DNA of 63,175 nt, the filler included, from Lenisia limosa (Eukaryota; Protista; Breviatea), in the NCBI GenBank assembly GCA_001655205.1. It is 13 parts of 13 records of this genome, joined end to end, with 100 filler letters (N's around TTAATTAATTAA, not from the genome) between each part and the next. Parts side by side here need not be neighbours in the genome. Positions count along the whole stretch, not along the records: positions 27,741 to 46,924 come from LPNZ01006270.1; 12 more parts are not named here. One strand, given 5' to 3'. The position numbers and the translations under genes are program-made. The stretch's first letter is position 1, and each line of letters begins with the position of its first letter. Below are positions 3,001 to 46,924 of the stretch, piece after piece. The notes under the pieces are model-generated. The model was not told where the DNA came from, made no database searches, and saw only the letters and a program-made list of their open reading frames with translations.

Positions 3001-4598
3001 TATAATATGATATTGATTTTACAAGTGTGTGGAGTGTATTATCTTACCATACAATATTCTATGATGGCATAATGAATGAGATGGTCAGAAGGTCTCAAAG
3101 GTGTATCTGTCGCTCTGTATCATTTCCTGATCCTTAATACAACATCCCTGATACATTAGAGTACCGGATTGAAGGGCTTGGAGGAAACGCTGAATAGCCA
3201 ACCCTCTGCTGTACCTTGTGAGGGGACGTTGGATAGCTAATATCGTGTGAAACAAATAATATGAGTCTGGAGGGGGGAGGTGTGTAATTATACTCTTCCC
3301 GCCAGAGGGTTTCGGCCAAATAATAACCTATCTCAGATACTATGCTCAAAAATCGACCCAGCGTATCGTCTGACACTACTATCACAAATCATCTCGTTCT
3401 TTCGCGATTATATATCGTGTTTTATCCTGACCTCATCTCCACCAGCCCCAACACCCACGCCCCCATTGCCTTCAGGCCGCGTCACCCCTACATCCGGCCG
3501 ATCAACCCGTTGGGGGGTGGGTAAACCAAGGATATTTCGATGAAGAATATTGTCGTACAAGTACCAATCACGAACCGAATAATTTGTTGAGTTTCTCTAT
3601 TGGCTAACCCCCCTGCAGAAGCGACTGGCCTGGGCTTGTTATTAACCCTTGTGTGTTGTCAGCGAACAGAGTTGATTCTGGGATATTATTATTATTATTA
3701 TTATTAATTTTTCAACTCACACCNNNNNNNNNNNNNNNNNNNNNNNNNNNNNNNNNNNNNNNNNNNNNNNNNNNNNNNNNNNNNNNNNNNNNNNNNNNNN
3801 NNNNNNNNNNNNNNNNNNNNNNNNNNNNNNNNNNNNNNNNNNNNNNNNNNNNNNNNNNNNNNNTAGCCCCGGTAGCTGTCTCAAATTCTGTGGAGGTATG
3901 AAAGTCCTTATAATGCGCCATCCTATCATCAGTTGATAGTGCGCCATCCTACCATCAGTTGCTGGTTTTCTCATAAAATGACATCTTACACCTCTCTCTC
4001 TCTCTCTCTCGTTTACCCCCCCCCCCCNNNNNNNNNNNNNNNNNNNNNNNNNNNNNNNNNNNNNNNNNNNNNNNNNNNNNNNNNNNNNNNNNNNNNNNNN
4101 NNNNNNNNNNNNNNNNNNNNNNNNNNNNNNNNNNNNNNNNNNNNNNNNNNNNNNNNNNNNNTAGTTTTAGCGTTGGTTGCTTGTGTTTGTTATTGCATTT
4201 TTTTTATTTTTTGTTTGGAGTTTCAGATTATACGTTGGTGATTAGTACCTTTACGCCAATATTTTTCATCGAAATTCCTTCGTCACTCTCCCCACCCCCA
4301 GTCAGTCGGCCGGCGTAGTGACCAAAGTGTCAAGACGTCCATGGCGTTCCAAACCGTGGAGACTCAGAAGGATGCTGCTGAGCCTTCAGGTGCGTTGCTG
4401 CCTTGTTAGCCCCTTCTTCACTACCATTGCTTTCATTAACCAAATGCGTGTCAGCCAAATTTCACTAACTACATCTATTAACCAACATCAGATAACCCAC
4501 TCCCTATGACCATCGCGCCCTCAGCTCAGCCTTTGAAGCGCCGAAGTTCAGTTCTTCTCAGTGCGCTCAGCTCCTTCCCCACCCGACAGAAGAAGTAG
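67..4598 (+). CDS. Mrc1/claspin-like acidic protein, multi-exon, 5' incomplete
   Basis: Joined GT-AG exons read ...RKRMDLLEDEAELSDEDK / EEDDDPADQLKAEDIQAIKEMVE / LAKAHLQFEERKENKVLAKIK / DMVQGKWRKNHNDSDDSDSQ ... PLKRRSSVLLSALSSFPTRQKK*(4596-4598). This resembles the MRC1-like domain (EAEESEDE..KEMIDD..KLFKDI..G.LRRK) from memory of the family. Confidence 0.55.
267..311 (+). repeat. Family B intron module, 5' part
   Basis: atgggatgcggtgctgcagaagcgactggccttgttttgttgtt, then an N gap. Confidence 0.8.
3614..3723 (+). repeat. Family B intron module
   Basis: ctgcagaagcgactggcctgggc...gtgtgttgtcagcgaacagagttgattctggg. Confidence 0.8.
4215..4301 (+). repeat. Family D module ending at the acceptor AG
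   Basis: ttggagtttcagattatacgttggtgattagtacctttacgccaatatttttcatcgaaatt...cccccAG. Other copies: 3533-3590 (-), 14738-14800, 20524-20570, 53301-53345. Confidence 0.75.
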
Positions 4599-6534
4599 CT
4601 GAACAGGTGTCTACGTGTCTATTGGATCATCATGTTTAATGTAAGATGTAAATTAGTCCGTTGGATTAACCACTCTTTTTATTCTGACGAAATAAAAAAA
4701 AATTGCATTACAAATTGATGCATTTTGGATTAACTGCTCTCCTCATTTACTCATTAATAGACTTGTAGTTCTGGTCAAACCGTACTATGTATCTCCCCAA
4801 GATTACCATCACAAAAACCATCAACATTCGTCGTCATCATATTCCTCTTCCTCCCATTGTGCTGGATCATAGTCCTGTGGTGTTACTACTGAAAAAAGTG
4901 CAACTAATCAGCTCATGCTGTACAGTATTATCCATCAAGCAAACACAGGAGTCATACCTTAATCCAGTCAGTACCTTTGTTCTCAGTGAGAAACATATTA
5001 AAACCCCCTCGTAACACGCACCTACAGTGTTAAAGCCGTAACAAGGGTTTGATGTGACTTTAAATTGCCACTCTGTAGTATCTTCATAAACATTCATAAA
5101 GATAAATATTATCAAGGTTCCATAGCATTGCATTGGGCAAGCCACATTAAAGCAAAGCTATCATCAGGATTCTCAATACGTCCATCACTTTGAGAGGCAA
5201 AATGGAAAACACCGCATATAAGGCACCCACCTACACTTTGGTTTGACTTTCCGGGTGTTTGCGCGTCAATTCTGATGCAAATGAGCGCGCAGCACTCGGG
5301 CCTCTCTGCTGGCTGAACATATAAATCGGTATGAAGTTCACTTCACTGACAAGTTCAACATACAGTATCAACATAATATTAGCGACTTTTTTGTATTTCA
5401 TCTATTTCACCAAACAAATCCTTCTTTTAAACAAGAAAGGTACAGCTCACCTCAACATGCAGTGGAAAATGACAGCATGGAAAGTGCTGTATCTATTCAC
5501 AAGTTGCTCCACCTTCAGGTGTGAACAGACGCATTACAAAGCAACATAGTGAGGAAAACGATATGGAAAATCTGGGGTTAGGTGTTCTGATATGAGTCAG
5601 CCTGTTGGTGCCTGTCGGTACGAACCCGTGTTAAAATACTATATGTAAATGACTCATCAGGAATACATTCGATTAAACTAAAAACACACTTAGAAATTAT
5701 TATGTATCCCAAGATGTTATTGTATTGAATGTAATTTTTCTAAAAACTCAAACAAACGTTGTTTGAAAACTCGTAGGCGGGTACGTTGAGGGCACCACGG
5801 ATATGGCCTCCTTGAATGTGAAGGAAGGATTATGAAGCACTATGTTGCTCTTGGGTGTGAAGGATTATGAAATAGTGTGCTGCTTTATCAAAACTATTGT
5901 AAAAATTAGATGTAACATTTGAGCAGTGTTAACACCTTGCACCGGCGAACAAAACTACAATCCTTACCCGCGAAATCGCTCTCTCTGACGTCAATAACCT
6001 GCACAGTGAGATGCCACAATATCTTATGATATCATATTATTAAACAAAAAGAAGAAGAAATAAGATGGCAAATTTGTTATTGGGGTGTATTAAACAAGTT
6101 ATTCTCCCTTGATTGCTGTCATTATGAGTCAATGGAAGTTGATGTGGAGTCCAAGAACTCAAGGCTGATTATTTTGTTTCGCTCCAGCCCTTCTTTAATC
6201 GATTTTTTAAGCAGGTATATGATTAGTGCAAACCTGAGTAGGACGTTTAGAGCTGATCAGCTCCTTGGCCTGAGCACCATTGATGCGCTGAACTCTCATT
6301 GAGGCTAACATCGGTTTTGACAGAGTTGAAAACGCCCGAAGCAACACTTTGTAACGTGAAAACATGATAAAACACACGACATAACAAAAATATGGCAACT
6401 ATCCGTTAGACCACCCTTGTTTCTGTGTTAAAAGCTCAATTCAAAATTTATAAATTAAATACAACAATACAAGTATTATATCAAGAGAGACGCATTGAAA
6501 ATAATCTTGCTTTTGCCGGAAGAAGCACTTGAAC

Positions 6535-27620: not shown

Positions 27621-28559
27621 AACGAGTGAGCAAATGCAAANNNNNNNNNNNNNNNNNNNNNNNNNNNNNNNNNNNNNNNNNNNNTTAATTAATTAANNNN
27701 NNNNNNNNNNNNNNNNNNNNNNNNNNNNNNNNNNNNNNNNATTGCAAAGGACGCAGTGGCAAGCCAGGTGGGGAGGATGATGGATGACTGCATCTTGGTC
27801 ATTCATGGAATCTGGTACATTCACAGGGATGGTTTTGAAATGAAGGAAAAATTTGGACGAAGCCGTCCACACTCATATTTATTAGGGGTATTGATTAATG
27901 CGGCATTGAAAGATTAGTAGTATGTCGCCTTTCAAAAGCATTATCATCAATAATACACCAAGCCTTTACGTTGTAGGTGAACAAGATACTCTCAAGGTAC
28001 CAGCAGTCCAAAAATAATGTCCCTGACGTAAGGGGTTTGAAGAACAACCTGTCCCAATATTATATTTCAATAATACCCAGTTTTCAATCTAAGAAGTTGA
28101 ATATTCGAATATTTTCAATTGGGTATACTTTCCTACCAGCTTGAATCAAGAAAATATGGTTCTCCCCGAACCATTAGTATTTTTGGCAGCTTTTTTTTTT
28201 TGCACTCACCTCAGCCACTATCTTTTACCCCCAAGCTCTGTTTTTTTTTGTTTTCAACCCTTGTNNNNNNNNNNNNNNNNNNNNNNNNNNNNNNNNNNNN
28301 NNNNNNNNNNNNNNNNNNNNNNNNNNAGCCAACAAAGCTTATTTTGGGCTTGTTTTTATTTCAAAAATTTCCAATTTCACTCCCCCCCGCACTCTATCCT
28401 GAGTGTTAGTTTTGATGCCGCTTCTGCCACATCACCGGATTCTATTCACCTTGCTGCATTTTTCACACTTATTAACAAATGAAACTGTGCGTTTTATATA
28501 TATATAGTTACATTTCACTCTTATTGTTCATGATATGTTATATATTACCCCCGCCGGTT

Positions 28560-28992
28560 TAATTTTGTTGCTCCGATAGCGGCCTTCTTTCACTGTGGTA
28601 CAAAACGGTGATTGAAGTATACCTACTTTGGTTATTGTGCCCAGATAGATTTTATCTAACCTCTGCAGGTACGCTGGATAGATGGGATGCGGTGCTCTAG
28701 CCTGGGCTTTGTTTGTTTTGTTGTCACCAACCCTTGTGTGTAATCAGCCAACAGAGTTGATTTGGGTATTTTATATTTCATAAATTTTCCAATTTTACTC
28801 CCCCTCCCCCCCACACTCACGCTCTTTGTAACCCTCCAGAGCTCAGCCCGGGATTCGNNNNNNNNNNNNNNNNNNNNNNNNNNNNNNNNNNNNNACAAAG
28901 TAGAGGTTGGTTTCAGAGTTGAAAGGCAAAAGAGTGGTAATGAAAACAGTAACATTGCATTTGCTACAATACCTGATAAGTGGGAGTGTTAG
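28560..28992 (+). CDS. Unidentified gene, internal exons flanking the B-element intron
   Basis: Exon GLLSLWYKTVIEVYLLWLLCPDRFYLTSA, intron 28669-28839, then ELSPGF...KVEVGFRVERQKSGNENSNIAFATIPD. Confidence 0.35.
28669..28839 (+). mobile_element. Family B element constituting an entire GT-AG intron (introner-like)
   Basis: cag|GTacgctggatagatgggatgcggtgct...cagccaacagagttgatttggg...ttcataaattttccaattttactcccc...ctccAG|agc. Another B tail lies at 28327-28390. Confidence 0.75.
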
Positions 28993-29037
28993 TACGGTAG
29001 GCTAATGTCAGCTTGTTATACTATTTTACTATTATTG

Positions 29038-29190
29038 GTATGCTGGGGAGGCACGTTGAAAGCTGTGTGCACAGAGTTGTAAGTTAAACGATTGGGTGAA
29101 TTAATATAATACTATAAATTCAATATCTCTTATAAGTGATGGTGTGGACGGCTTCTGCCAGATATAACCTTGTTTTTTATTTCTCAATTC
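29038..29190 (+). repeat. Family C module (full length)
   Basis: gtatgctggggaggcacgttgaaagctgtgtgcacagagttgtaag...gtggacggcttctgccagatataaccttgttttttatttctc. Confidence 0.9.
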
Positions 29191-29390
29191 TATTTATATA
29201 TTTATATGTAGCATAAAATCTATTTTTAATCTGTTTAATCTGAAGACCTAGCGTAATAGTTTACATCCTCTTGTAATTAATAATATGCTCACTTGGATAA
29301 TTATTAATAAATAACAGAGTTGATATCCTTGTTTTTAGCTGCAAGCATTCCCTTTTTTTTCCTCACCACATCTGATTCAAGTAGCTTATC

Positions 29391-32300
29391 CTAGATTTTG
29401 AAGATGAATTCAAAGTGTCGATATCGGACCGACAAATGACAAAGATGGAGTCCAAGAATGATGCAGTCAACATCATCACTGATTGCCTCAAGGACCAGTC
29501 CGGTTTGCCGGTATATGTTTAATATTGGGAAGGGGGAAATAAAAAAACGAGCGGTCTTGTTCCAATATCAGTTCAAACAGTCGAGAAAAGACCGCTTTTT
29601 TGACAAGCTCACATGCCTCTTTTTGGATATGCAACCTTCACTGTTTAGGCCTGGATGTCACCGAAACAGACCAAAGTGAAGAGGTGGGTAATTGGTTTTG
29701 GGTTTTTGCTTACAAATACAGGATTTCGGGTAGCGTGATTCTGACAGTTATGGTAAGGAATTTCAGTTGAAAGTGGCCAAGAGAAAAAGATCTAAGAGTA
29801 CATTAATCAACCTTAAAATAGTGTAGCATTTGTAACAATACATGATAGTTTCCGTTATAATGAGAGGTAAACTTTGTTGGGGTGTGAACGTTTGAGGCGA
29901 CAATGGATACCATGAAGACAAAAGCGGAACTGTGGTACCTGAATCGTGAGAATGGGCGGTTTGTATCTTTTCAAGGGACTAAAGAGGCTGTATAGCTCAA
30001 TATAAAAAAACGTTGAGGATTATGATTATTTGAAAAAATCCTTGATCCGAAAAAAGGGTAACATGACCAACCGCGGGGATGGAATGAAGATGGACAAATC
30101 CCGAGTACACTGGAATTGGTGATGTGGAGTGAGGCGGCTACAGGGTGAGGAAGGGTGAGGAACAGGATTTACATGTACATACACATACATAGAACAAGGA
30201 ACACGCAGTATAAAAAAGGCGAATTATGCGTTTGAACAGAAGCCAACTTTGTACTTGGTAATAAGGGCATCAAGATCAACTCCAGCACTTTGAAGCTCGG
30301 TTACAATTTTGACTCCGGTCCACGCATCAAGAGCTGAAAACCATGATGAGATAGCCTCTTGAAAATATTGTATTATATGCCCCATTTCACTCATCAATTT
30401 ATTGTTTTTTTTTATATCTAAATGGTTCCAAAAAGACTAAATTCCTGATAAATCTGATAAATTTTGATATTTTACTCGTCTTTTGTACAGGAATGTCTAT
30501 TGAGCCCCTCCCTCATCAGGCCCGTTCTCACCAGCATAAACAAGCTGCCCTTCTGAAAGAGGCCGTTTCTCCCAATTGCTGCATTGATACACCTTATTCA
30601 AAGGCTTGCCACATGATGCATTTGTCTGCAGTATTAGTAGGTTGAAATAAATGAACAATGAAACATAGTAAATCCGAGCGGCGACATCATCATATTTAAA
30701 GAGACTCTTGATGTTACATCTAAATATTGATAAAGTGCTACTACCTGGTATCCAGTAAACCGCCATTAGCAGCATGTTTGAAAGTGGCAAAGAATAAACA
30801 CCCAGTCACCCAATTTGCGAGAGAGCACGTGGCAAATTCAACTGGAGGCTCCCCATTTTTTTTCTTGAGGAGGTTGATGTACTGAGCTGGTGAATATGGA
30901 AGGGGGTGGCGAGTACATACAGTGACTGTGATAAGGCCTGACACGAATACTGAGCTTTATCTTAGTCAATCGTGTCAGGACTTATCGCGGTCACTGTAAA
31001 TTGTTTGATTCTGAAGTCAAACAGCGCACCTCAGTACTAAGCTCCTTTGAAAGGTTTTGTAAGTCAATCACGTTAAAATCTCCAAGGGAAATAAAGTCAG
31101 TAGGCTCCACTAAATCATCAGGACAGACCACGCAGAGTATCAACGAGAAAAGAATAGTAATCCTGAGTTCTGCAGTTCAGCCACAAACCAGATTCTTCTG
31201 AGTGGAACACAGACGAGGGCCATGTCACATTACTCACTAACTGTTTGATAGTCTGAGGGTCAGCAGGGGTTTAACATAAAATATGATTAGAACTTCACTC
31301 AGACCAAAAGTACTCGAGGAACATTTCCCATTTAAGGAGGATATTGAAGAATATGTATACTACTATATGTGGGCCGAGTTTACAACCCCCAGCCGACTGT
31401 ATGCAAGTCAGTTCGGATGCCGACACCGCAAAACACCGCGCCAGTTGAAGAAAGGGATGACAGGAAACGGAGAATTTGCTGCTTTTGTCAGATTTTCACT
31501 GGAATAAAACCCAAATGCGAGATTAAAGCACATCCCTCAAACAGCGGGCTTCAGAGTCCGGCAGTCAAGAATGTAGGTTGTGGACAGAATGGACAACTGA
31601 ACATGAAAACACAGAGGACAGCCAAACTTGAATGATAGAGACCGGGTTGGGGTCCGGAAGCAGGTTCATGAACCACTCTGTGTCAACTCCAATATACTGA
31701 TGGTTTTCGGCGCTTCTTGAAAGTTCCTTGGAGATTAGAGCAATTATGGCTGAGATCAAATTTCATGAACCCATTATGTTGACCCTTGCAACCATGAGAG
31801 TTTGCTTCAGAAGGTCTAGGGTATCCACATAGATGATTTTCACATGAGCAGGGAAAGCCATGTATTTGCCATAGTCCAGACGCATGCCACTTTGGAACCC
31901 TGAAATGATAAGTCCACTGAGAAAACTGTCTGGAGACTCAGCACTATGATGATCAAAAGCAACAAACGTCATCTCATTGAAAACGCTACCTGCCATCCTT
32001 GGTTTGCAGATCCGAGGCAAGTTCAATTGTGAAGGCAAATATCCCCCAAACCAGGAAGGGGTGTCCCATATTCAATTTGAGGAATGCCAGTGCACTGGAA
32101 AAGAGACTCAGAACCAACCTAAATAAGCTAAGATATCGCGGCTTCAATTCTATCTTAAAATGCCATAAAAATAAAAACTATGCTTTGATTCCTGGTGAAT
32201 AACGAAAGAGATCAATTTGAAGCTCACCCCATGCATTGGTTTAAAAATACTAGCCACTCACAACAGTGCGGATAAAACTCTTGAGGGAGGAGTACATGGG

Positions 32301-35300
32301 ATCCAAAAGGGACGTTGTGTGTACAATACTGCAGATTTCAATACACGTCTGCAGTGTTAGCCTCGTGCTTCAACAACAGTTGGGCACGAAAGAAGTTGGG
32401 AAAATTCCAAATTCAAATTCTCTCAGAAGTGATTTATAAAATGAAATATCGTATTCTATAAATATATATCATAATATATACACATACGCATCACATTGAT
32501 AGAATGACCTATGAAGAGCGTGGCTAGAACCAAGGTCAACCCTCACCTGAGCAGCCTCAAAAATGGTCATTTTAGCTTCGTTACCTGATTAGATAAATTC
32601 AGGCTTCAATTCTCCCTCTTTTATGGAGGTTAAGACGTAATTTTAACACTAGCTCTTATTGCTACATTCAAACTAACCCTTATACCAGATTGCATAGTAT
32701 TGAAGGCAGGTTTCAGGTACTTGTGCTGAAGAAAACGGGACGCCTCATCAAGTTTGAACTTGATCGCCTGGGTTGTCAAACAGAAGGATGTTCATGTGGG
32801 GATATAATATAGAGAATGCAAGCCAAAAGTTATGTTGACCAAGTTGAGTCACAAAAAGTGAAACAAATACACAAAATTCAATGCAAACTGGATAGATGAT
32901 CAATTCTCAGCAGTAAATAAACATTTACAACCTTCATACAGTGACAATGAGATAATGAGGAAACAAGTACTGCTGATCCACAATTAACTTGTGATGATGT
33001 TTGTTGAGCTAAACGTATATAAATACTGGACAACTTTTCACCTCTTTCATACCGTTCCAGCATTGGAATTCTAAAAAGTGAAAACAATTCAAGAATTGAC
33101 CAATAGTTAGGGCTTTACTTAGGTTCGAAAAAAGACTGAATTTTTTGATAAATCCTCGAAAATTATCGATATTTTACTGGTATTTTTCGAACCGAAGTGA
33201 AGCCCTACCCATAGTCCAGAAGACCCACTCGAATAATTTCATCAGTAATCATTTTGCGGGTTGTTTCGTTACCGAATCCTGATTGGACGGCTTTCCTGAT
33301 GGCGGGGACAATACCTTTCTCAAACGCACAGCGTAAGGCAACCTTAACAAATGAGTCTCTGATTGAACCATGATGGTAAAGCCGTAATTACGCAGTTGTA
33401 GCAGATCACAGATTATGATAATGATCAAAGATAAAAAAACTTGTAAAAAAAATCTTAATAGAATGAACAGTATGCAACATCTTTCTAAGGAAAGTAGAAA
33501 ATGTTACTTTAAGTTGCTCAGAAAAGGTTAAAACTTGGAGGGAACTAACTTCAAAGTGTGTTGGTGACCCTTCTTTCAACAATTCAGGAAGAAGATGAAG
33601 AGCCTCCATGATAGCTGAATGTGAGTGAGTGGCATTCAACGTACCAAGGGGGGCCGGGTTAGCAGGGTTCCTTGCTTCTTCAATAATCTCCCTTCCAATT
33701 GAGAGTATGTCTATTTGGTTCTCAGATTCCCTATTCGGTCAGTTGAAGGTGTATCAAAAATTAGATGAAGCAAAATGAGAAAAGTGAATATGTATCTGTA
33801 TATGTTATAAAAAGTCAAGTCATTAGTTGCCTTCATCAAGTACAATTTACAAAAAATAGTTCTTTTGTTTAACAAAAGTGAGACAACCCAGAAAATAACA
33901 AACTTTTTCAGAAGGTAGAGCTTCGACAACAAACCTGGAATGGTAAAGAAAGATTATTCGAAGCAAAGCCGAATGTTTGACTAATACATACATATCATTG
34001 AGTATATAACATAAAAGCAAGGCGAGGATCCCTCAAACTTGAAGAAACTTCGAGCGGAACAAATGTGACGCTCTCAATAAGTGCAGCGTCCACATCTGAG
34101 TTATGATGCCGGTGTTAATTTGTGTTACTCTTTCAAAATACTTGGGGTAATTTACTGTCAATACTATGGCAATTCATCCAAAAGGACAAGTAAAATATAG
34201 ATTATATCAATAATTCACCCTGTTTTCGAAGCATTAATAAACTATGAAATCGCAGGAGTGACCCAAATAATTGCATTGGGCAACGTATCTTGTACAAAGT
34301 ATCTTTTTATGCTGCAATAAATAAGACCCAAAACTGAATTCCAATTTTCCTTCTTACAAAACCACTTCCACAAGTAATCTTCCTCAATTCCCATAGAACA
34401 CAGGAAGAAACTTGCGTTAACAAAGATCTGATGTTTATACTGCTGTCAAGTACCTTTTGGAAAATCACACTCGTTTCAATTTGATTCGGTAAATTGACGC
34501 TAACTACTTGACAGGAATATTGAAAAATAAAATAAGAACCCAAGCGAAAATTGTGATGATTACAGAACACACAGGGGCGAATGCATACCTTTAGACCTTG
34601 ATGTGATAAGGGACTTATGGGACAGGGCAGAGAACTGGGTAGCGAGAGTCTTTTCAATTGACCCAACTTCATATGTTTGCGTACTTGGGGCATAGCTTGC
34701 AACAAATGACTGGTATAAGGCCCTGGAGATATGACTTAAGTGCTGCGGATCTAATGATTAAGATGGTCAATAGAATTGAAAACCCAAAGAGCGTTTTATT
34801 TGAAGTAAGAGATAATTTGATCGTGACCTTCATTCCCTTAGTCCAACCTGACTGATGTGTAGACAAGATAAAGAATATCTTCATGAGTTGTGTCATTCAT
34901 CAGATAGCGGAATACCTAGAGATAAGATCCCACAAAGCAGGATTTTTATAAATGCTGCTTATGCCATTAGTACTTCTTTGTCATCATTCCTCCTAGTAAC
35001 ACGATAAATGTCGTCATTACTTTTATTGTTAAGAAATTACCCACCTTTAAAATAAAAGGAAAATAGGATGATTCGAGGGGATAAGTCTTGAGAAGCAGGC
35101 TCGACAATGCGGTCATCAGTTGTGGACGATTGACGATCCTGGCACTTTTTGGGTTGGGGCAGAACGGTGGTGACGGGCCCATTAATGGCTGGTTGGAAGA
35201 GGGATCCTGACAAGTGAGATTTGAAATAATTCCCCAAATGACCTGCCGTGACAAACCGCATCTTCGTCTTTAGGCAGGAAGGCATTGCAGTAAGCATTGA

Positions 35301-35863: not shown

Positions 35864-37241
35864 TTACTTCTTCTTGCTGGCATGAAGCAGCGCGGCCATC
35901 GCACGCACCTCTTCAAGGAAGACTGAAATAAAGTCCACTGAGTGAACAAGTGTGTCGGCCTGGAGGGGGGTGGGGGTGAACAACGAATATTGCTAGGTCA
36001 GAGTAACATAAACACGTCGAAAGAGTCTGGGTGGACAGGACGAAGCAATAATGGAGATGGCCTACCTTGGAGGTTTCACGTGAACAGGCCGGCACGAGGG
36101 TGCGAAGTTCATCAATACAGTCATTCATGATGATTCGTCGTTTTTGCTCAACCTGTACACGTCACTACTGCAACACCGAGAGCAAAGTGATAACACGAGC
36201 TATGTTTGCCCAACTCACTTCATTGTGCTTGAGCTTACGGATTTGGTCTCTTTCGTTTCCATCCCCAACTCTATTTAGGTGATAAGAGAAAAAAACAAAG
36301 AATTAAGGGAATCATGTAAGAGCACAGTAACAACATTCTAAAACAAGCAGCTGTATCATCATACCGTTTACGAGCAGGCATGGATTTGGAAGAGGCCGCA
36401 CGGTCGACATGGGGGGACGTGTAGCATGGAATGCCTTCAACCAGGCTGTTGACCGGCGACGAGGACTGCGACATGGTTCGTGAGATCTTCTGGCGTCGGG
36501 TTGGCTTGATGAAATCGTCGTCTTCGTCATCGCTAACAATGACGCGTGCTGTGCGGCTACGTGTCACAGGGACTTGTGAACGGATGGGGAGAGGTTCGTC
36601 TTCATCCCGTTCAGGAGTGCGGCGCTTCAGGGTTGGGGCGACGGGCTCGAATTTCTCATCATCGGCAAGGGGCGGGAGAAGAGTGGCGGTCTCGGGAACT
36701 ATTTCAAATTCGTCAATGTACTTACTTGGTTCAGTAGAAGTGGCAGAGGTGATAGAAGCGACTTCATCTTTGTCGTCAGTATGGAGATCGTCGTCAAATG
36801 CGGTGAAAGTTGGCTGGAACTCAGTGAAAGTCTCAACCCAGTGTCTGGATTCAGCAATCTCATCATCTTCACGAATTCGGCGGAGTTCAGCGACTCGCTG
36901 GGCCGCCCTGGTAGGATCGAGATAGGGGTAGGCGAGCTCAATTGCAGTGTAAGGATCGTCTAAAAAGTCACTATATTGAGCCCACAAAAAATTCAATGAA
37001 CCGGAAAAAGAAAAAGGGAAAGGTCACTCCTAAAAGGTTTCCCCCCTTTGCTACCTTTGAATATATACTAAAACAACACCAGCTAACCTATTTCTCCAAG
37101 ATAAGAGTCATCCCAAGCAGCTCTATTCACTTCAGGATGTTCAAAACGGTAAATAGGGTGATCCTCTGTTGGAGCCCTAATTGAAAGGACTGAGCTTCGA
37201 TCAAATAAGAACGGAGTGGATGTTTTGTGGAAAGAAGCCAT
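35864..37241 (-). CDS. bHLH transcription factor
   Basis: C-terminal RKLKHNE/VEQKRRIIMNDCIDELRTLVPACSRETSK/VFLEEVRAM bHLH motif after a long acidic/Ser-rich exon (ORF 36271-36996). Confidence 0.85.
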
Positions 37242-37719: not shown

Positions 37720-40700
37720 ATGATGACCTGGAGAGGTTCTATTATTTTAACTATTTTGGCTTTGGCTGTTTCTCTTGTATCGGCTTCGGGAAGAACACCA
37801 GAAGAATGGAAAGACCGGATTATTTACCAGGTTCGGGGTGAGACTGCTTATTCTTCAATGCCATATGCCATCTGATAACCCATTTATCCCTTTTGGCTTC
37901 ATCTTTCTCATTGACTAGGTTTTAACCGATCGGTTCTCGAAAACACCCGGTGAAGATATGTCCAAGATTTGCAAGGGACAGGTGAGCTTGCGTGTCAGTG
38001 TTTCTCTTATCACATTGCAGGGGTATTGTGGAGGAACTTTCATGGGGCTTGTGTCCAAGCTTGACTACATTGAAGCTCTTGGTGCCAATGCGGTGAGGGG
38101 AGAGGGTAAAATAGGAATTTTATGGCGTATGTCATATAGTATATATCACACCGTCCATATATCTAGCAACAAGAGTTTTATGACAATTCTCTTAGTTATA
38201 TGCCATATTTTTAGCAAAATATTTCGAATATTTCAAAAAAGTTCACAGATAGAGGAAAATTCACAGATATATGGACGGTGTGATATATGTGTGGGGGGGG
38301 GGCATTTCTTCTCAATGCAAACTGAAGTATCCGAACATCCGAGGTCTAGAACACTAATAGTTGGAAATTTGGAAGAAGCAGTAAAACGGCTGATATTAGA
38401 AATAAATATGATCAGGCTAAGTAAATGCAAGATTTGTCAATGACACAACTCTGACACTCTAGATCTGGATTTCACCGGTGTTTGATAACTTTGAAGAAGG
38501 GTTCCATGGTACGTCTGTTTCTTAAAGATCTGACATGCAGGTTATTGGCCTCGTGACTTCTTTGCTGTCAATGCCCACTTTGGAACTGAGGATGAGCTTA
38601 GGACCCTGGTTAAGGAGTGCCATAAACGTGATGTGAGCTAAGATTGCTTTTTCACAGTAAAGCTCATTTTATTGGAATTGGTTATAATATATTATGTATT
38701 ATGTATGATATGATATATTGTACATAGCTACGCCAAGAGCACATGCTCCGAAAAGACCTGTAAAATGGCTATTAATCGTTTGGAACAGTTTGAATACCCT
38801 AGATGCCATTTCCACATCGTCATTGTTTTAGATCTGGGTGATGATCGATACTGTTGCAAACCATGCTGGAAGAGACGAAATCGACTCAATCAAGCCTTTT
38901 AACAACCCGGCTCATTATCATTCCTATTGCCTGGTTTGTTTGGGGCGCTCTCAGAGACACTATGAGCAATAGAATATTGTGTATTATCTCGATATAGTAT
39001 TATGTGCAACTTGATACAACTTTTCAGTTCTTGCTTGACACTTGCTTTGATTGGTTTCTTACGTTTACTTTCTAGATTAAAGACTGGAGCAACCAATGGG
39101 AGGTTGAAAATTGCCGCCTTGGTAAGTTCACTTCAGTCTATAAACCCACTGGTAAAATATCAATATCAGTCGAGGACAAGGTGCATCTAGTTTATAAAAC
39201 AGTGCAGGTTTCTTAATTCACCGTCTCTCAACTGATCAATACAGCTGGCCTTCCCGACCTCAAGCAGGAAGTTGACTGGGTGCGTGACAAGCTCATTGAG
39301 TCCGGACAGTGGCTGTTTGACTTCGGAATCGACGGACTGCGTGTCGACACCGTCCCCGAAGTTCCGTCTTGGTTCTGGGATAGATGGTCACAGGTGCGCT
39401 TCTTTGCCTCATAGCTAAACAGTCACTCCCCTGTATAATTCTTGATCAATTTCGATAATAGTTGACCAGAGTATGCTCTTCTCATTTGCCTTGTTTTGGC
39501 CTGATTTGACATTGTAAGGCTATGAACAACACCTACATGATTGGAGAAGTCTATAATGGAGATCCCTCTTACGTTGCTTCTTACCAGGTATGAGTGTAAT
39601 TAATGCTCCGTGTTATTAATTTTCTGAGGAAATTAACTGTAAAAATGAGAAATAAAAGTATCTGAAATGGTGTTATCGTTACAATATAATACCTCACTTC
39701 ACTTTTTGAATTATTTTTTATTTTTCAATTAATTGCACGGAGTACTAGGGGTAATGTATTTCAGGCTAATTGAACTTAAGCGGCTGAGGCTGATTCTTTA
39801 GGGACCCCTCACTTCCGTCCTCTCGTACCCTGCATTCTTCAAGGAACGCAATGCTTTCATTAACGGGTTAGCTGGGATTTTCGGGTCAACAAGGCTTGGA
39901 AATTATCAATATTGTAACATTTGTCAAGAAAAATGTATGAGAACCTCAAGTGTGTAATGTCTCTGAATGGAAAATTCTGCCATTTTATTTTTCACTTGGA
40001 GATTATTTGTTTTCATAATGTTAGTCAGATGCAATCGTTTCACATCGCATATTTTCACGCTCGTAGTGCAAGCATGAAAGAACTGCAGGAGTCAGCAAGT
40101 GATATTCTGGCGCATTTCAAAGACCCGTATCTCATCGGATCATTCGCCGATAATCACGACCAAACAATGTTCCTCAACCTGCAACCGGACTACACCCTTT
40201 ATAAGAACCAGCTTATGACAACTCTCACCTTCATTGGTGTCCCCATCATTTACCAGGGAACTGAGCAAGGTGGGATGATTCTCATAATTAGACTTAAGGG
40301 CAAATAAACCCAGTATTGGTTTGGTCTTTACAAAGTAGTAAAACCTCCTCACAGTATAGGTTATAATGGACCCAATGACCCATGGAACAGAGACTCTATT
40401 TGGCCTAACTACAACACTGAGCATGAAATCTTCCAATTCCTCAGGTTTGTTCGGATTGCAGCCTTTACTGATTTCGTAGCAACACAATAAGTGTTTTGAA
40501 GGAAACCGGGCTTTTGAGAGAGGAGTTCAAGGAAGTCTGGGCTGACAACGACTGTTATGTATGCAAAATGACTTCATTTTATAAATGATTTCTTCTTTCA
40601 TGATTGATATTTATTTCGTTGACTCAGAGTTGTACATCTACCCTCTTTGGGCAATCTACTAACCTTTTAGGTTTACCTCAGAGGTGGTGTGGCTGTTGTG

Positions 40701-44100: not shown

Positions 44101-46298
44101 AGTATCTAATCATGCCTGTGGAAGTTTTGTCGATTAAGAGGGTTGAGCTAACATGTTTTTTTGCATGAGGGCCTTCTTTTTCTTCGTAATGAACTCAGGA
44201 GGTCTGCGATCCTACATAATAAGCTGAAAATCTTGAGAGAGAAATCAGAAAATAAAAGGACAGTGTAAAAAAACATCCCATATTTCAGGTACATAAGACA
44301 GTTTGAAAACAAAGCAATCAGCAGCCCCGCTATGTTACCTTCAGTTTCTCTTCAATTTCGAGGCCTTGCTTCTTGGTTGAGATGATCTTCAGAATCTCAG
44401 TCAAATCCTTCTCAAATCCTGGGGCATCAGGCTGATAATGAAAATTCATCTTTCAGAAGCCAATCCATGAACAAAAAGAAACGGGGAATACTCCGGTTTT
44501 AAAGTGCTTTGAGAAATATTCTGAGATCAAGTTTGCCCATACTTTCACCCATATTTTACCCTAGTACCCATATCAAGGAGTCGATCAGCCTCATCAAGTA
44601 CAAGTAGCTGCAGGCTTTTGACCGAAAGAGATTCAGTATGGCGAAGATGGTCCAATAAACGTCCGGGGGTTGCAACAAGAATAGTCACACCTGCAATGTC
44701 AATCCGTAAGTTTTCATCTAATGAAAAACAACGTGTCCATCAAGTAAAATGAAGTTATTTCTCTTTCTTACGGTTCCCAAACTTACCCTTGCGTAAACGG
44801 GCCTTTTCGCTCTTTTTCCGTTCACCACCCATGACCAAGCCAGGTACGATGAAGTTGAAGGGACGGCCGACGGACTGAAATGGATAAGAACTACTTCGGT
44901 TCGAAAAAAGACTGAATGTCTCCATAAATCCTCGAAAACTATCGATATTTTACCGGTCGTTTTCAAACCGAAGTGAAGCCCTTAAAGAACACAATCATAA
45001 TATCTGATGAAAATGAAAGCCATCTCCCTATCACACACATCAAAAGAAATAGTGAAGCCCTTAAAGAACACAATCATAATATCTGATGAAAATGAAAGCC
45101 ATCTCCCTATCACACACATCAAAAGAAATAGTGAACCAAAAAAAAACATAAAGTGCTCTTGATGGAAGCAAACCAACCTGAATTACTTCGAAAACTTGAA
45201 GGCCAAGCTCTCTTGTTGGCACAATGACAATACCCATGCACCCGGAGGAGCGATCAACACGTTTTGTACGTGCGGCAGACAGAATACCTTCAATCATGGG
45301 GACAGTGAACGAGAGAGTCTTTCCTGAGCCAGTAGCACTCTTAACAAGAACGTCTTTTCCTGGTTTTTGTAAGCAATGGTATGAAAAAAAAGCATCGCGG
45401 CAAACCTTTGAGAAGATGAGGAATTGCATTCTTTTGGCACCTTGTCATAGACTTAAAACCAAGGGAGTCTGAGTAATTTAGCACAATCTCACAAAAAGAC
45501 ACAAGTCGGAATGCAAAGGCCATTACAGACCTTTAATGTGCTTGGCAAGATTCTCTGATATATCCAGTTGCGCGAACTCAGTAGCAGCAATCACGACACC
45601 ATCACCCCTCGAGGTAGCCACGTGCGACGAGGCAGATGAAATAGCTGTGGCCGTCATGGGACTGATTTAAAAAACAGTATGGTTTTTAAAGACCCAGTCC
45701 ATCATTTTTTACAGCCCAGTTGCTCAATCCACTCAGAAGAAATCAAGAGCGAAAGAATTTATTGTGTACAATAATATATTAATATTATATAAATACTCCA
45801 GACAAAGACATATCCCAATCTTAGCCCCTCATACAAGACTTTGCTTTCTCAACAGTTGGCTCAAGGGCAGAGTCGCGATGTTGGGCTATCTGCCCCTTAA
45901 CACGAAGCCTTTTTCCTGATTTCTTGGGGGCTGCCTTCTTCCCATCATCTTTAGAGTCCTTCCCTTCCTTGATGTTATTGCTTGGTGTCTTCTCAGCCTT
46001 AGCTTCAGATGGGGCTGGTTCTATATAGTGAACAAAACAAAACAAACATCTTTCTGATCCCCTGGCACTCTACTGCCATTCTGACGCCCCTCCACCCACG
46101 TTTCTTCTTGATTGGTCGCTCAGGCTTGGCTTTGGTAAAATCAACAACATTAGACTTCTTCTTCACCTGGGCAACAAGAGGCGAAGAAATCTCGCTTTTC
46201 TCTACGCGGACCCCTTTCTTCTTTGCCGCCATTCTGTCTCTCTTTGCCTGCCTCTTGGCATTGAACCGCTCCTTTGAAGTGAGGCCATCGCCTTCCAT
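41122..46298 (-). CDS. DDX31: DEAD-box RNA helicase DBP7/DDX31
   Basis: Lys-rich N-terminus (MEGDGLT...), [84 protein letters not shown]-terminal KVSEFF*. Confidence 0.92.
43523..43563 (-). repeat. Family C 3' part in a DDX31 intron (sense to the gene)
   Basis: Minus strand gacggccagatacaaccttttatttctcatctcta. Confidence 0.7.
44889..44981. mobile_element. Family A MITE in a DDX31 intron
   Basis: acttcggttcgaaaaaagactgaa...ttcaaaccgaagtgaagccc. Confidence 0.85.
44973..45135 (+). repeat. 79-bp direct tandem duplication (intronic)
   Basis: gtgaagcccttaaagaacac...aaaagaaata starts at 44973 and 45052; gtgaa recurs at 45131. Confidence 0.92.
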
Positions 46299-46508
46299 TT
46301 TGAGGGCGTGGTGGCAAGAAGGGTAAGGTGGTTGCTCCGGTCTATGTCGCCTCTACGTATCACAAAATGCACCGCTGTACAGAAACACTTATCAGAGTTG
46401 CTAGAGAGAAAGAGAATGAAAAGAAGAAAATGGAATGATATATACTCGAAAAAAAAATATCGACAGATGCCCTTCCTCTTCGAAAAGATTTTTCAATTCG
46501 ACTTCAAG

Positions 46509-46924
46509 ATGAACTTAGAGGTATGTCTCAATCTGCTCTTGTGCTCTTGGATAGCAAAACTTACAATAAAGGTGAAGAAGACGATAACGGGGCTTAACAG
46601 CCCCGGAGAGTACACTTTTCCAACGGGCGAAAAGTATGTTGGAGGCTTCAAGGACGGAGCGTTTGATGGCAATGGTACCATGTTCTACCCTTCAGGAACC
46701 CAGTATTCTGCAGAATGGAAGGACGGCAAGGCAATAGAAGTAAGCCACTCGGGACCATAAAACGGCTCCAACTGACGGTCCAATCAGAGAAGGGGGCTGA
46801 TGGTTTAGGGCACAATTACCTTCCCTGACGGCCTTGAATATGCGCCTTCCGATTGGGACTTCTGTACAAAATCGGACCGAAGGTTCCAAGACGAACGTGT
46901 CCAGGGCTTTAAGCCGCTTTGTTG
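46509..46924 (+). CDS. MORN5: MORN repeat-containing protein 5, 3' truncated by a contig end
   Basis: GEYTFPTGEKYVGGFKDGAFDGNGTMFYPSGTQYSAEWKDGKAIE/GTITFPDGLEYAPSDWDFCTKSDRRFQDERVQGFKP matches the MORN5 pattern (..W.YC...DRRF..E...GLKP). Confidence 0.8.

Follow-up and report, generated by a model that had tools for sequence, protein, structure and literature searches.

SINEs can give splice signals to their host genes, as is the case for Alu-derived 3′ splice sites. Introners, which are intron-generating transposons, are defined operationally by a similarity that reaches both splice boundaries (PMC9860276). In Micromonas, Aureococcus, dinoflagellates and others they are short, non-coding elements of high copy number in aquatic protists, which start with GT, end with an AG used as acceptor and lie in the sense of the host gene; some families lack TIRs and target-site duplications (TSDs), or contribute one splice site only (PMC9860276; PMC12130899). 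The introner-like elements of fungi similarly have GT…AG ends and a sense orientation with neither TIR nor TSD; each makes up an entire intron, for which a stable secondary structure is predicted (van der Burgt et al., 2012; PMC3609843). Their orientation prompted RNA-level models that involve reverse splicing (PMC3609843). A different arrangement is seen in recursive splice sites and stwintrons, where a 3′ splice site is juxtaposed to a 5′ splice site, as in the ratchet points of Drosophila and the spliceosomal twin introns of fungi (PMC8469720). Our search for literature on breviate introns, repeats or introners found none. Breviatea form a deep branch of Obazoa, and we know of no introners or nuclear repeats described there.

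The repeat analysed here, family B, lies in a gene of the breviate Lenisia limosa. The window, i.e. the whole stretch of DNA that was analysed, is 63,175 nucleotides long including filler; the locus falls in the piece taken from LPNZ01006270.1, which begins at 27741, and positions count along the window unless a contig is named. B resembles the introners of protists in being short, non-coding and of high copy number, in starting with GT, in having an AG at its end that serves as acceptor and in its sense orientation. It is unlike them in that the similarity coincides with the intron at the 3′ boundary alone, the donor being further upstream by 641 window positions, or 587 real bases, and in that two copies occupy one intron. 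With the fungal elements it shares the GT…AG ends, the sense orientation and the absence of TIR and TSD; however, at this locus it is neither a whole intron nor stably folded (−34.4 kcal/mol, whereas shuffled sequences average −34.9; z = 0.13, no better than shuffled). As at recursive sites, a junction of the exact form (Y)nCAG|GTAYGC is found inside a long intron (28654-28674). In contrast to recursive sites and stwintrons, no intermediate is present in the RNA contigs, and the junction belongs to a repeated unit and may never be used.

Splicing of the host gene

Poly(A) RNA contigs of run X2 were aligned to the locus, the absence of RNA being judged at an identity of at least 96%. A single 568-nt RNA contig (depth 51, zero mismatches) covers the host gene in six pieces, and the features that it defines are collected in Table 1. 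Positions 227 and 228 of this contig are adjacent, and the mRNA therefore joins 28027 to 28840. It follows that the intron is 28028-28839 and that B forms its last 171 nt. Once small alignment ambiguities are resolved, the host gene has five introns on the plus strand, each bounded by GT..AG. The reading frame is open at every junction, including 28027|28840 where it reads …NNVPD|SSARD…, and closes with the stop TAG at 29731-29733. A hypothetical exon that extended to 28668 would be interrupted by a TAA in frame; the spliced RNA contig holds no exon end at 28668, and the run X2 contigs contain no RNA within 28029-28820 at the identity threshold given above.

Table 1. Positions of the B copies, their surroundings and the host gene in the window, with the alignment of the RNA contig.
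Feature	Position	Strand	Remarks
Host exon end, cut by piece edge	27741-27767	+	reads IAKDAVASQ; RNA contig; GT..AG joint to 27977
Intron, 209 nt	27768-27976	+	joint 27765 to 27975 (cut +2), GT..AG; holds inverted partial R2 copy 27838-27894
Exon, 51 nt	27977-28027	+	RNA contig 175-227; frame open
B-bearing intron	28028-28839	+	812 window positions = 758 real nt; GTAAGG to CAG; holds both B copies
B copy 1	28235-28395	+	5′-truncated, spans N gap, intron-internal; own end unused as acceptor; local alignment to copy 2
Flank before B	28584-28668	+	ends with acceptor-like ATCTAACCTCTGCAG; repeated ~20-30 times joined to B head
B copy 2	28669-28839	+	GTACGCTGG head, core, T-rich stretch, C-run, then 21 nt to the CAG acceptor
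Last 21 nt before the exon	28819-28839	+	ACGCTCTTTGTAACCCTCCAG: branch-point-like GTAAC 9 nt before AG, pyrimidine stretch, acceptor; absent from copy 1
Next exon, 57 nt	28840-28905	+	reads SSARDSSDVIALDEIDKVE; RNA contig 228-282; length counted with 28 real nt for the 37-N gap
Intron with R2 mid-way	28906-29384	+	RNA contig, joint resolved
R2, second very high-copy repeat	29038-29190	+	starts GTATGCTGGGG; depth ~125,000-155,000; mid-intron 28906-29384
Last coding exons	29385-29502, 29649-29683, 29722-29733	+	introns 29503-29648 (146 nt) and 29684-29721 (38 nt); stop TAG 29731-29733
RNA contig positions 150-174	27741-27765
RNA contig positions 175-227	27975-28027
RNA contig positions 228-245	28840-28857
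RNA contig positions 246-282			37 letters filling N gap, ending ACAAAGTAG
RNA contig positions 283-401	29383-29501
RNA contig positions 402-435	29648-29681
RNA contig positions 436-568	29720-29852

In the preliminary description B had been taken for an entire intron, spanning GT to AG exactly, with CAG at both junctions. The letters are as described, the CAG ahead of the GT of B lying at 28666-68 and the second at 28837-39, but the RNA contradicts an exact intron, as its joint 28027|28840 makes B only the 3′-terminal part. Two related claims hold in a weak form at this locus: the last base of the second copy is an acceptor in use, and both copies, in this one intron, are in the sense of the host. 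Set beside the operational definition of an introner, only the 3′ boundary coincides (B starts at 28669, the intron at 28028). B did not make its own intron here, a statement that holds for the mature-RNA evidence at one locus. In poly(A) RNA the depth summed over B is ~88, while this single host gene alone has a depth of 51; in DNA, B reaches ~10,000 times the depth of unique sequence. Mature mRNA therefore seldom includes B, which shows a strong depletion in poly(A) RNA when compared with DNA.

The intron begins with ~200 nt of unique sequence, which are followed by the first copy of B, a spacer of 263 nt and the second copy; other repeated pieces are present in it as well. The product is a short acidic C-terminal tail that belongs to no family; an assignment of the peptide VIALDEIDKV to AAA-ATPases was dropped. 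The same gene contains introns of 146-758 nt and an RNA-supported intron of 38 nt (29684-29721).

An independent SPAdes contig that is free of gaps (ENA ERZ3820729, NODE_323; 29,074 nt; L008, L009 and L011) contains the locus with the same order and sequence. Comparison with it shows that the gaps of the scaffold are mis-sized: the true length is 8 nt where the scaffold has 62 N (28265-28326) and 28 nt, which are coding, where it has 37 N (28858-28894). A contig of run X1 skips 9 positions in the 37-N gap. Both gaps lie at or beside B copies. The product of a neighbouring ORF (P0001) falls into one 90%-identity cluster with a L. limosa protein from EukProt, and the organism is therefore this breviate or a very close relative, in agreement with the poly(A) library of 2016, which is labelled metatranscriptomic.

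Structure of the B element

The second copy, 171 nt on the plus strand, reads GTACGCTGG…CCCTCCAG, with GT at 28669-70 and AG at 28838-39. It opens with a donor-like GTAYGC, and its tail holds a branch-point-like TTTTAC and a C-run. The copy agrees with the family consensus proposed earlier except for a deletion of ~10 nt in its head; the loose-end consensus of contigs before 28700, …CTGCAGAAGCGACTG, places this deletion in the local B head. At 28725, 28742-43, 28768, 28773 and 28775, the letters that predominate among the contigs likewise match the version of the consensus given there. The reported absence of TIRs is borne out, the sole terminal complementarity being CTGGA/TCCAG, which is 5-6 nt long and offset by 5 nt from the 5′ end. 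That B has no ORF is loosely true: it has no supported frame or homologue, but a stop-to-stop frame of 107 codons runs across it on the minus strand. A homologue search with this frame returned none.

B has neither the TIRs nor the TSD of fixed length that define MITEs and TIR DNA transposons, and the CAG/CAG repeat around it is inseparable from splice signals. Nor does it have the hallmark of SINEs, a pol III head of tRNA, 5S or 7SL origin. A tRNA scan of B with ARAGORN found none, neither an A box nor a B box was seen in B when judged by eye, and an Rfam search of B at E ≤ 10 gave zero matches. Peptides derived from B (copy 1 sense, copy 2 antisense) were compared with proteins and matched only the window's own product. 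An exhaustive HMMER search with the B peptide yielded a single match, an unrelated tandem-repeat protein on a Tara contig, which was rejected. A scan of JGI metagenome contigs for exact 19-mers of B returned 7 loci, all of them chance matches of 19-21 nt, and a scan of viral contigs for B gave 0 matches.

Copy number and association with a second repeat

The Logan contigs of run X1, which is of DNA type, were aligned to 27741-32700 (4,960 bases) at an identity of at least 85%. This placed 7,188 contigs on the region, mostly over B and a second repeat, R2, which is about as abundant. Over the core of B (28725-28743) the contigs add up to a depth of 283,000-330,000, compared with ~34 on the unique flanks. 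As summed depth is not the same as copy number, the count of B is taken solely as an order of magnitude, and on that scale the depth suggests roughly 10^3 to 10^4 copies. B makes up ~2% of the DNA in L. limosa. That B is a repeat, as first described, is upheld both by this depth (~330,000 versus ~34) and by the nearby second copy in the same orientation.

Only two copies of B are found in the 29,074-nt contig, both in one intron and both sense to the plus-strand gene. Copy 1 is without the GTACGCTGG…GCCTGG head and aligns with copy 2 from GCTCTGTTT to CCCCCGCACTCT only, with 77% identity over ~100 nt. The likeness of the two copies ends after …CACTC, at ~28818. Other contigs of the B family in run X1 diverge from the local sequence at 28803-28813.

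A motif search showed that the first 11 nt, GTAYGCTGGRG, are common to the B consensus and to R2, an unrelated family. R2 occurs in both orientations in NODE_323, inverted partial copies being present at 27838-27894 (inverted repeat I1; 57 nt, 72% complementary), L011:4817-4972 and L011:10074-10130. Genomic contigs of run X1 link the tail of B to R2 and to B itself; the families thus form mosaics, often arranged head to tail, of a kind typical of repeat-rich DNA. Near 30950-31000 there is a third, smaller repeat.

Flanks and 3′ end of the element

Because the copies are alike only to ~28818, the GTAAC, the pyrimidine stretch and the CAG at 28819-28839 may be local rather than part of B. The spacing from GTAAC to AG in this segment matches that of the other four RNA-defined acceptors of the host gene, in which the branch point lies 9-10 nt from the AG. 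The last 21 nt before the exon would be either the original intron end of the host or a variable tail of B.

At its other end B is preceded by a segment that is itself repeated. In run X1 the depth of this flank is 650-1,030 at 28625-28658, as against 33 at 28573. A further genomic contig aligns unbroken over 28584-28724, across the CAG|GT at 28668/28669. This junction is thus within a repeated unit; it marks no unique end of an exon and is not a clean TSD. When the two flanks were tested for such a duplication, TAACCTCTGCAG and TAACC-CTCCAG gave a score of 7, unrelated acceptors in the host gene scoring 4-6 (shuffle p ~0.07). The earlier proposal that the CAG at both junctions is possibly a co-opted target duplication is therefore weakened, since the flank 28584-28668 is repeated and its likeness to the acceptor is not significant.

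Origin of the element and its relation to the intron

On balance B is probably an unclassified non-autonomous repeat that lies in, and lengthens, an existing intron, with the acceptor directly after the element. A short, non-coding interspersed repeat with thousands of nuclear copies in L. limosa, possibly accompanied by the repeated 85-nt piece upstream, would have inserted into an existing intron or at its 3′ end. The insertion would have lengthened the intron 28028-28839, and the mRNA would be left unchanged by B, since the C-run appears to be separated from the exon by a branch point that works, a pyrimidine tract and a CAG. Against this reading, the coincidence of the B end with a used acceptor, the donor-like start, the branch-point-like TTTTAC with the C-run in the tail and the sense orientation look more intron-like than would be expected of a random repeat, an observation made on two copies in one intron. 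If B does no more than occupy introns, it is a commonplace abundant repeat of a poorly studied protist and would matter mainly for genome annotation, where it causes assembly gaps.

It is possible, if somewhat unlikely, that B is instead an element of the introner type, with a working donor GTAYGC and a working 3′ end (branch point, C-run, AG), which inserted immediately downstream of an older acceptor, …ATCTAACCTCTGCAG|, and so created a 3′ss|5′ss junction resembling a recursive splice site. Splicing of the 758-nt intron would in that case take two steps, with removal of 28028-28668 first and then B (recursive), or B first and then the outer intron (nested, stwintron-like), and both orders would give the observed mRNA. 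The CAG|GTACGC at 28666-28674 agrees well with this, as a perfect CTAAC is placed 10 nt before the AG of the CAG, with the same spacing as at the other four acceptors. However, the CAG|GT junction and the preceding 85 nt are repeated, so that the ‘older acceptor’ may be the interior of a longer repeat and not the end of a host intron. The AG of B is in use, but the family similarity seems to end 21 nt before it, and the resemblance between the two acceptor regions (score and p value as above) is not significant. The depletion of B from poly(A) RNA counts in favour of this reading; neither splicing intermediate is present in the RNA contigs, although contigs drop rare forms. The 5′-terminal GTAYGCTGGRG common to B and R2 also argues for such an element, as do the one-splice-site families without TIRs or TSDs that have been described, mostly in aquatic protists (PMC9860276). 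Copy 1, on the other hand, is intron-internal with both of its ends unused.

A wider version of this idea, which we regard as distinctly doubtful, is that B, and perhaps R2, constitute a family that generates or extends introns, carrying a donor and a C-run 3′ end. Its insertion beside acceptors would create recursive sites, and introns would grow head-to-tail by the addition of sense units. If B does carry splice signals and builds or lengthens introns, Breviatea would join the short list of groups with active intron gain, and the family would provide a natural example in which recursive splice sites arise from transposon insertion.

It is improbable that B is a retroposed SINE-like element, in which case the flanking CAG or TAACC…CAG would be the duplicated 3′ end of a host intron and the acceptor would be derived from the host. 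B does resemble Alu-type SINEs in being abundant, non-autonomous and intronic, with a pyrimidine-rich part beside a used AG and with no ORF or TIR, and copy 1 is 5′-truncated with its 3′ part intact, as target-primed reverse transcription predicts. Unlike them, B acts in the sense orientation and adds no exon, has no A-rich or simple-repeat tail and no pol III-type head similar to tRNA, 5S or 7SL, and is found without a partner LINE in the 29 kb. TAACCTCTGCAG and TAACC-CTCCAG do flank B as a duplication would, but their similarity is not significant and the upstream flank is within the repeated unit. Finally, an assembly artefact, in which the GT…AG unit was mis-joined between the two wrongly sized N gaps that flank the region (28265-28326 and 28858-28894), is very improbable, as NODE_323 has the identical order with no N, Logan DNA contigs bridge both gaps and the RNA contig fits the exons exactly.

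Genomic surroundings

The neighbouring gene upstream, also on the plus strand, contains three tandem exon–intron modules that are 72-85% alike (L011:3574-3585, 4255-4280 and 5148-5170). The acceptors of these modules have the form CTAAC-C5-6-AG, with a further C-run ahead in two of them. When these C-run acceptors were considered as tails of B, the alignments proved no better than shuffles, and this candidate was rejected. C-rich intron ends may be common in the L. limosa genome.

A tRNA-His (GTG) gene is located ~360 nt upstream of the start of the piece (L008:19457-19528; L008 minus corresponds to the plus strand of the window), and the last exons of the host gene lie just downstream of it. 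Further along the piece, matches to Pfam identify a bHLH domain (35916-36161, minus strand), a GH13 alpha-amylase of fungal type (CGGTF…KLDYI; 37919-40304, plus strand), a DEAD-box helicase (45064-45444, minus strand) and a MORN-repeat protein (46278-46757, plus strand). The region of the alpha-amylase gene contains a perfect 24-nt inverted repeat, 38141-38164 and 38265-38288, with its arms 100 nt apart. Public gene calls on L008, L009 and L011 read TGA as Trp (P0002), as in the bacterial code 4; most of the resulting ‘proteins’ are artefacts spanning introns and repeats. A MITE-like unit of ~110 nt at 33103-33212, with 30-nt TIRs that are 87% complementary, has a second copy 11.8 kb away at 44892-44982 (89% alike). 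This second copy adjoins a perfect 79-nt tandem duplication at 44972-45129.
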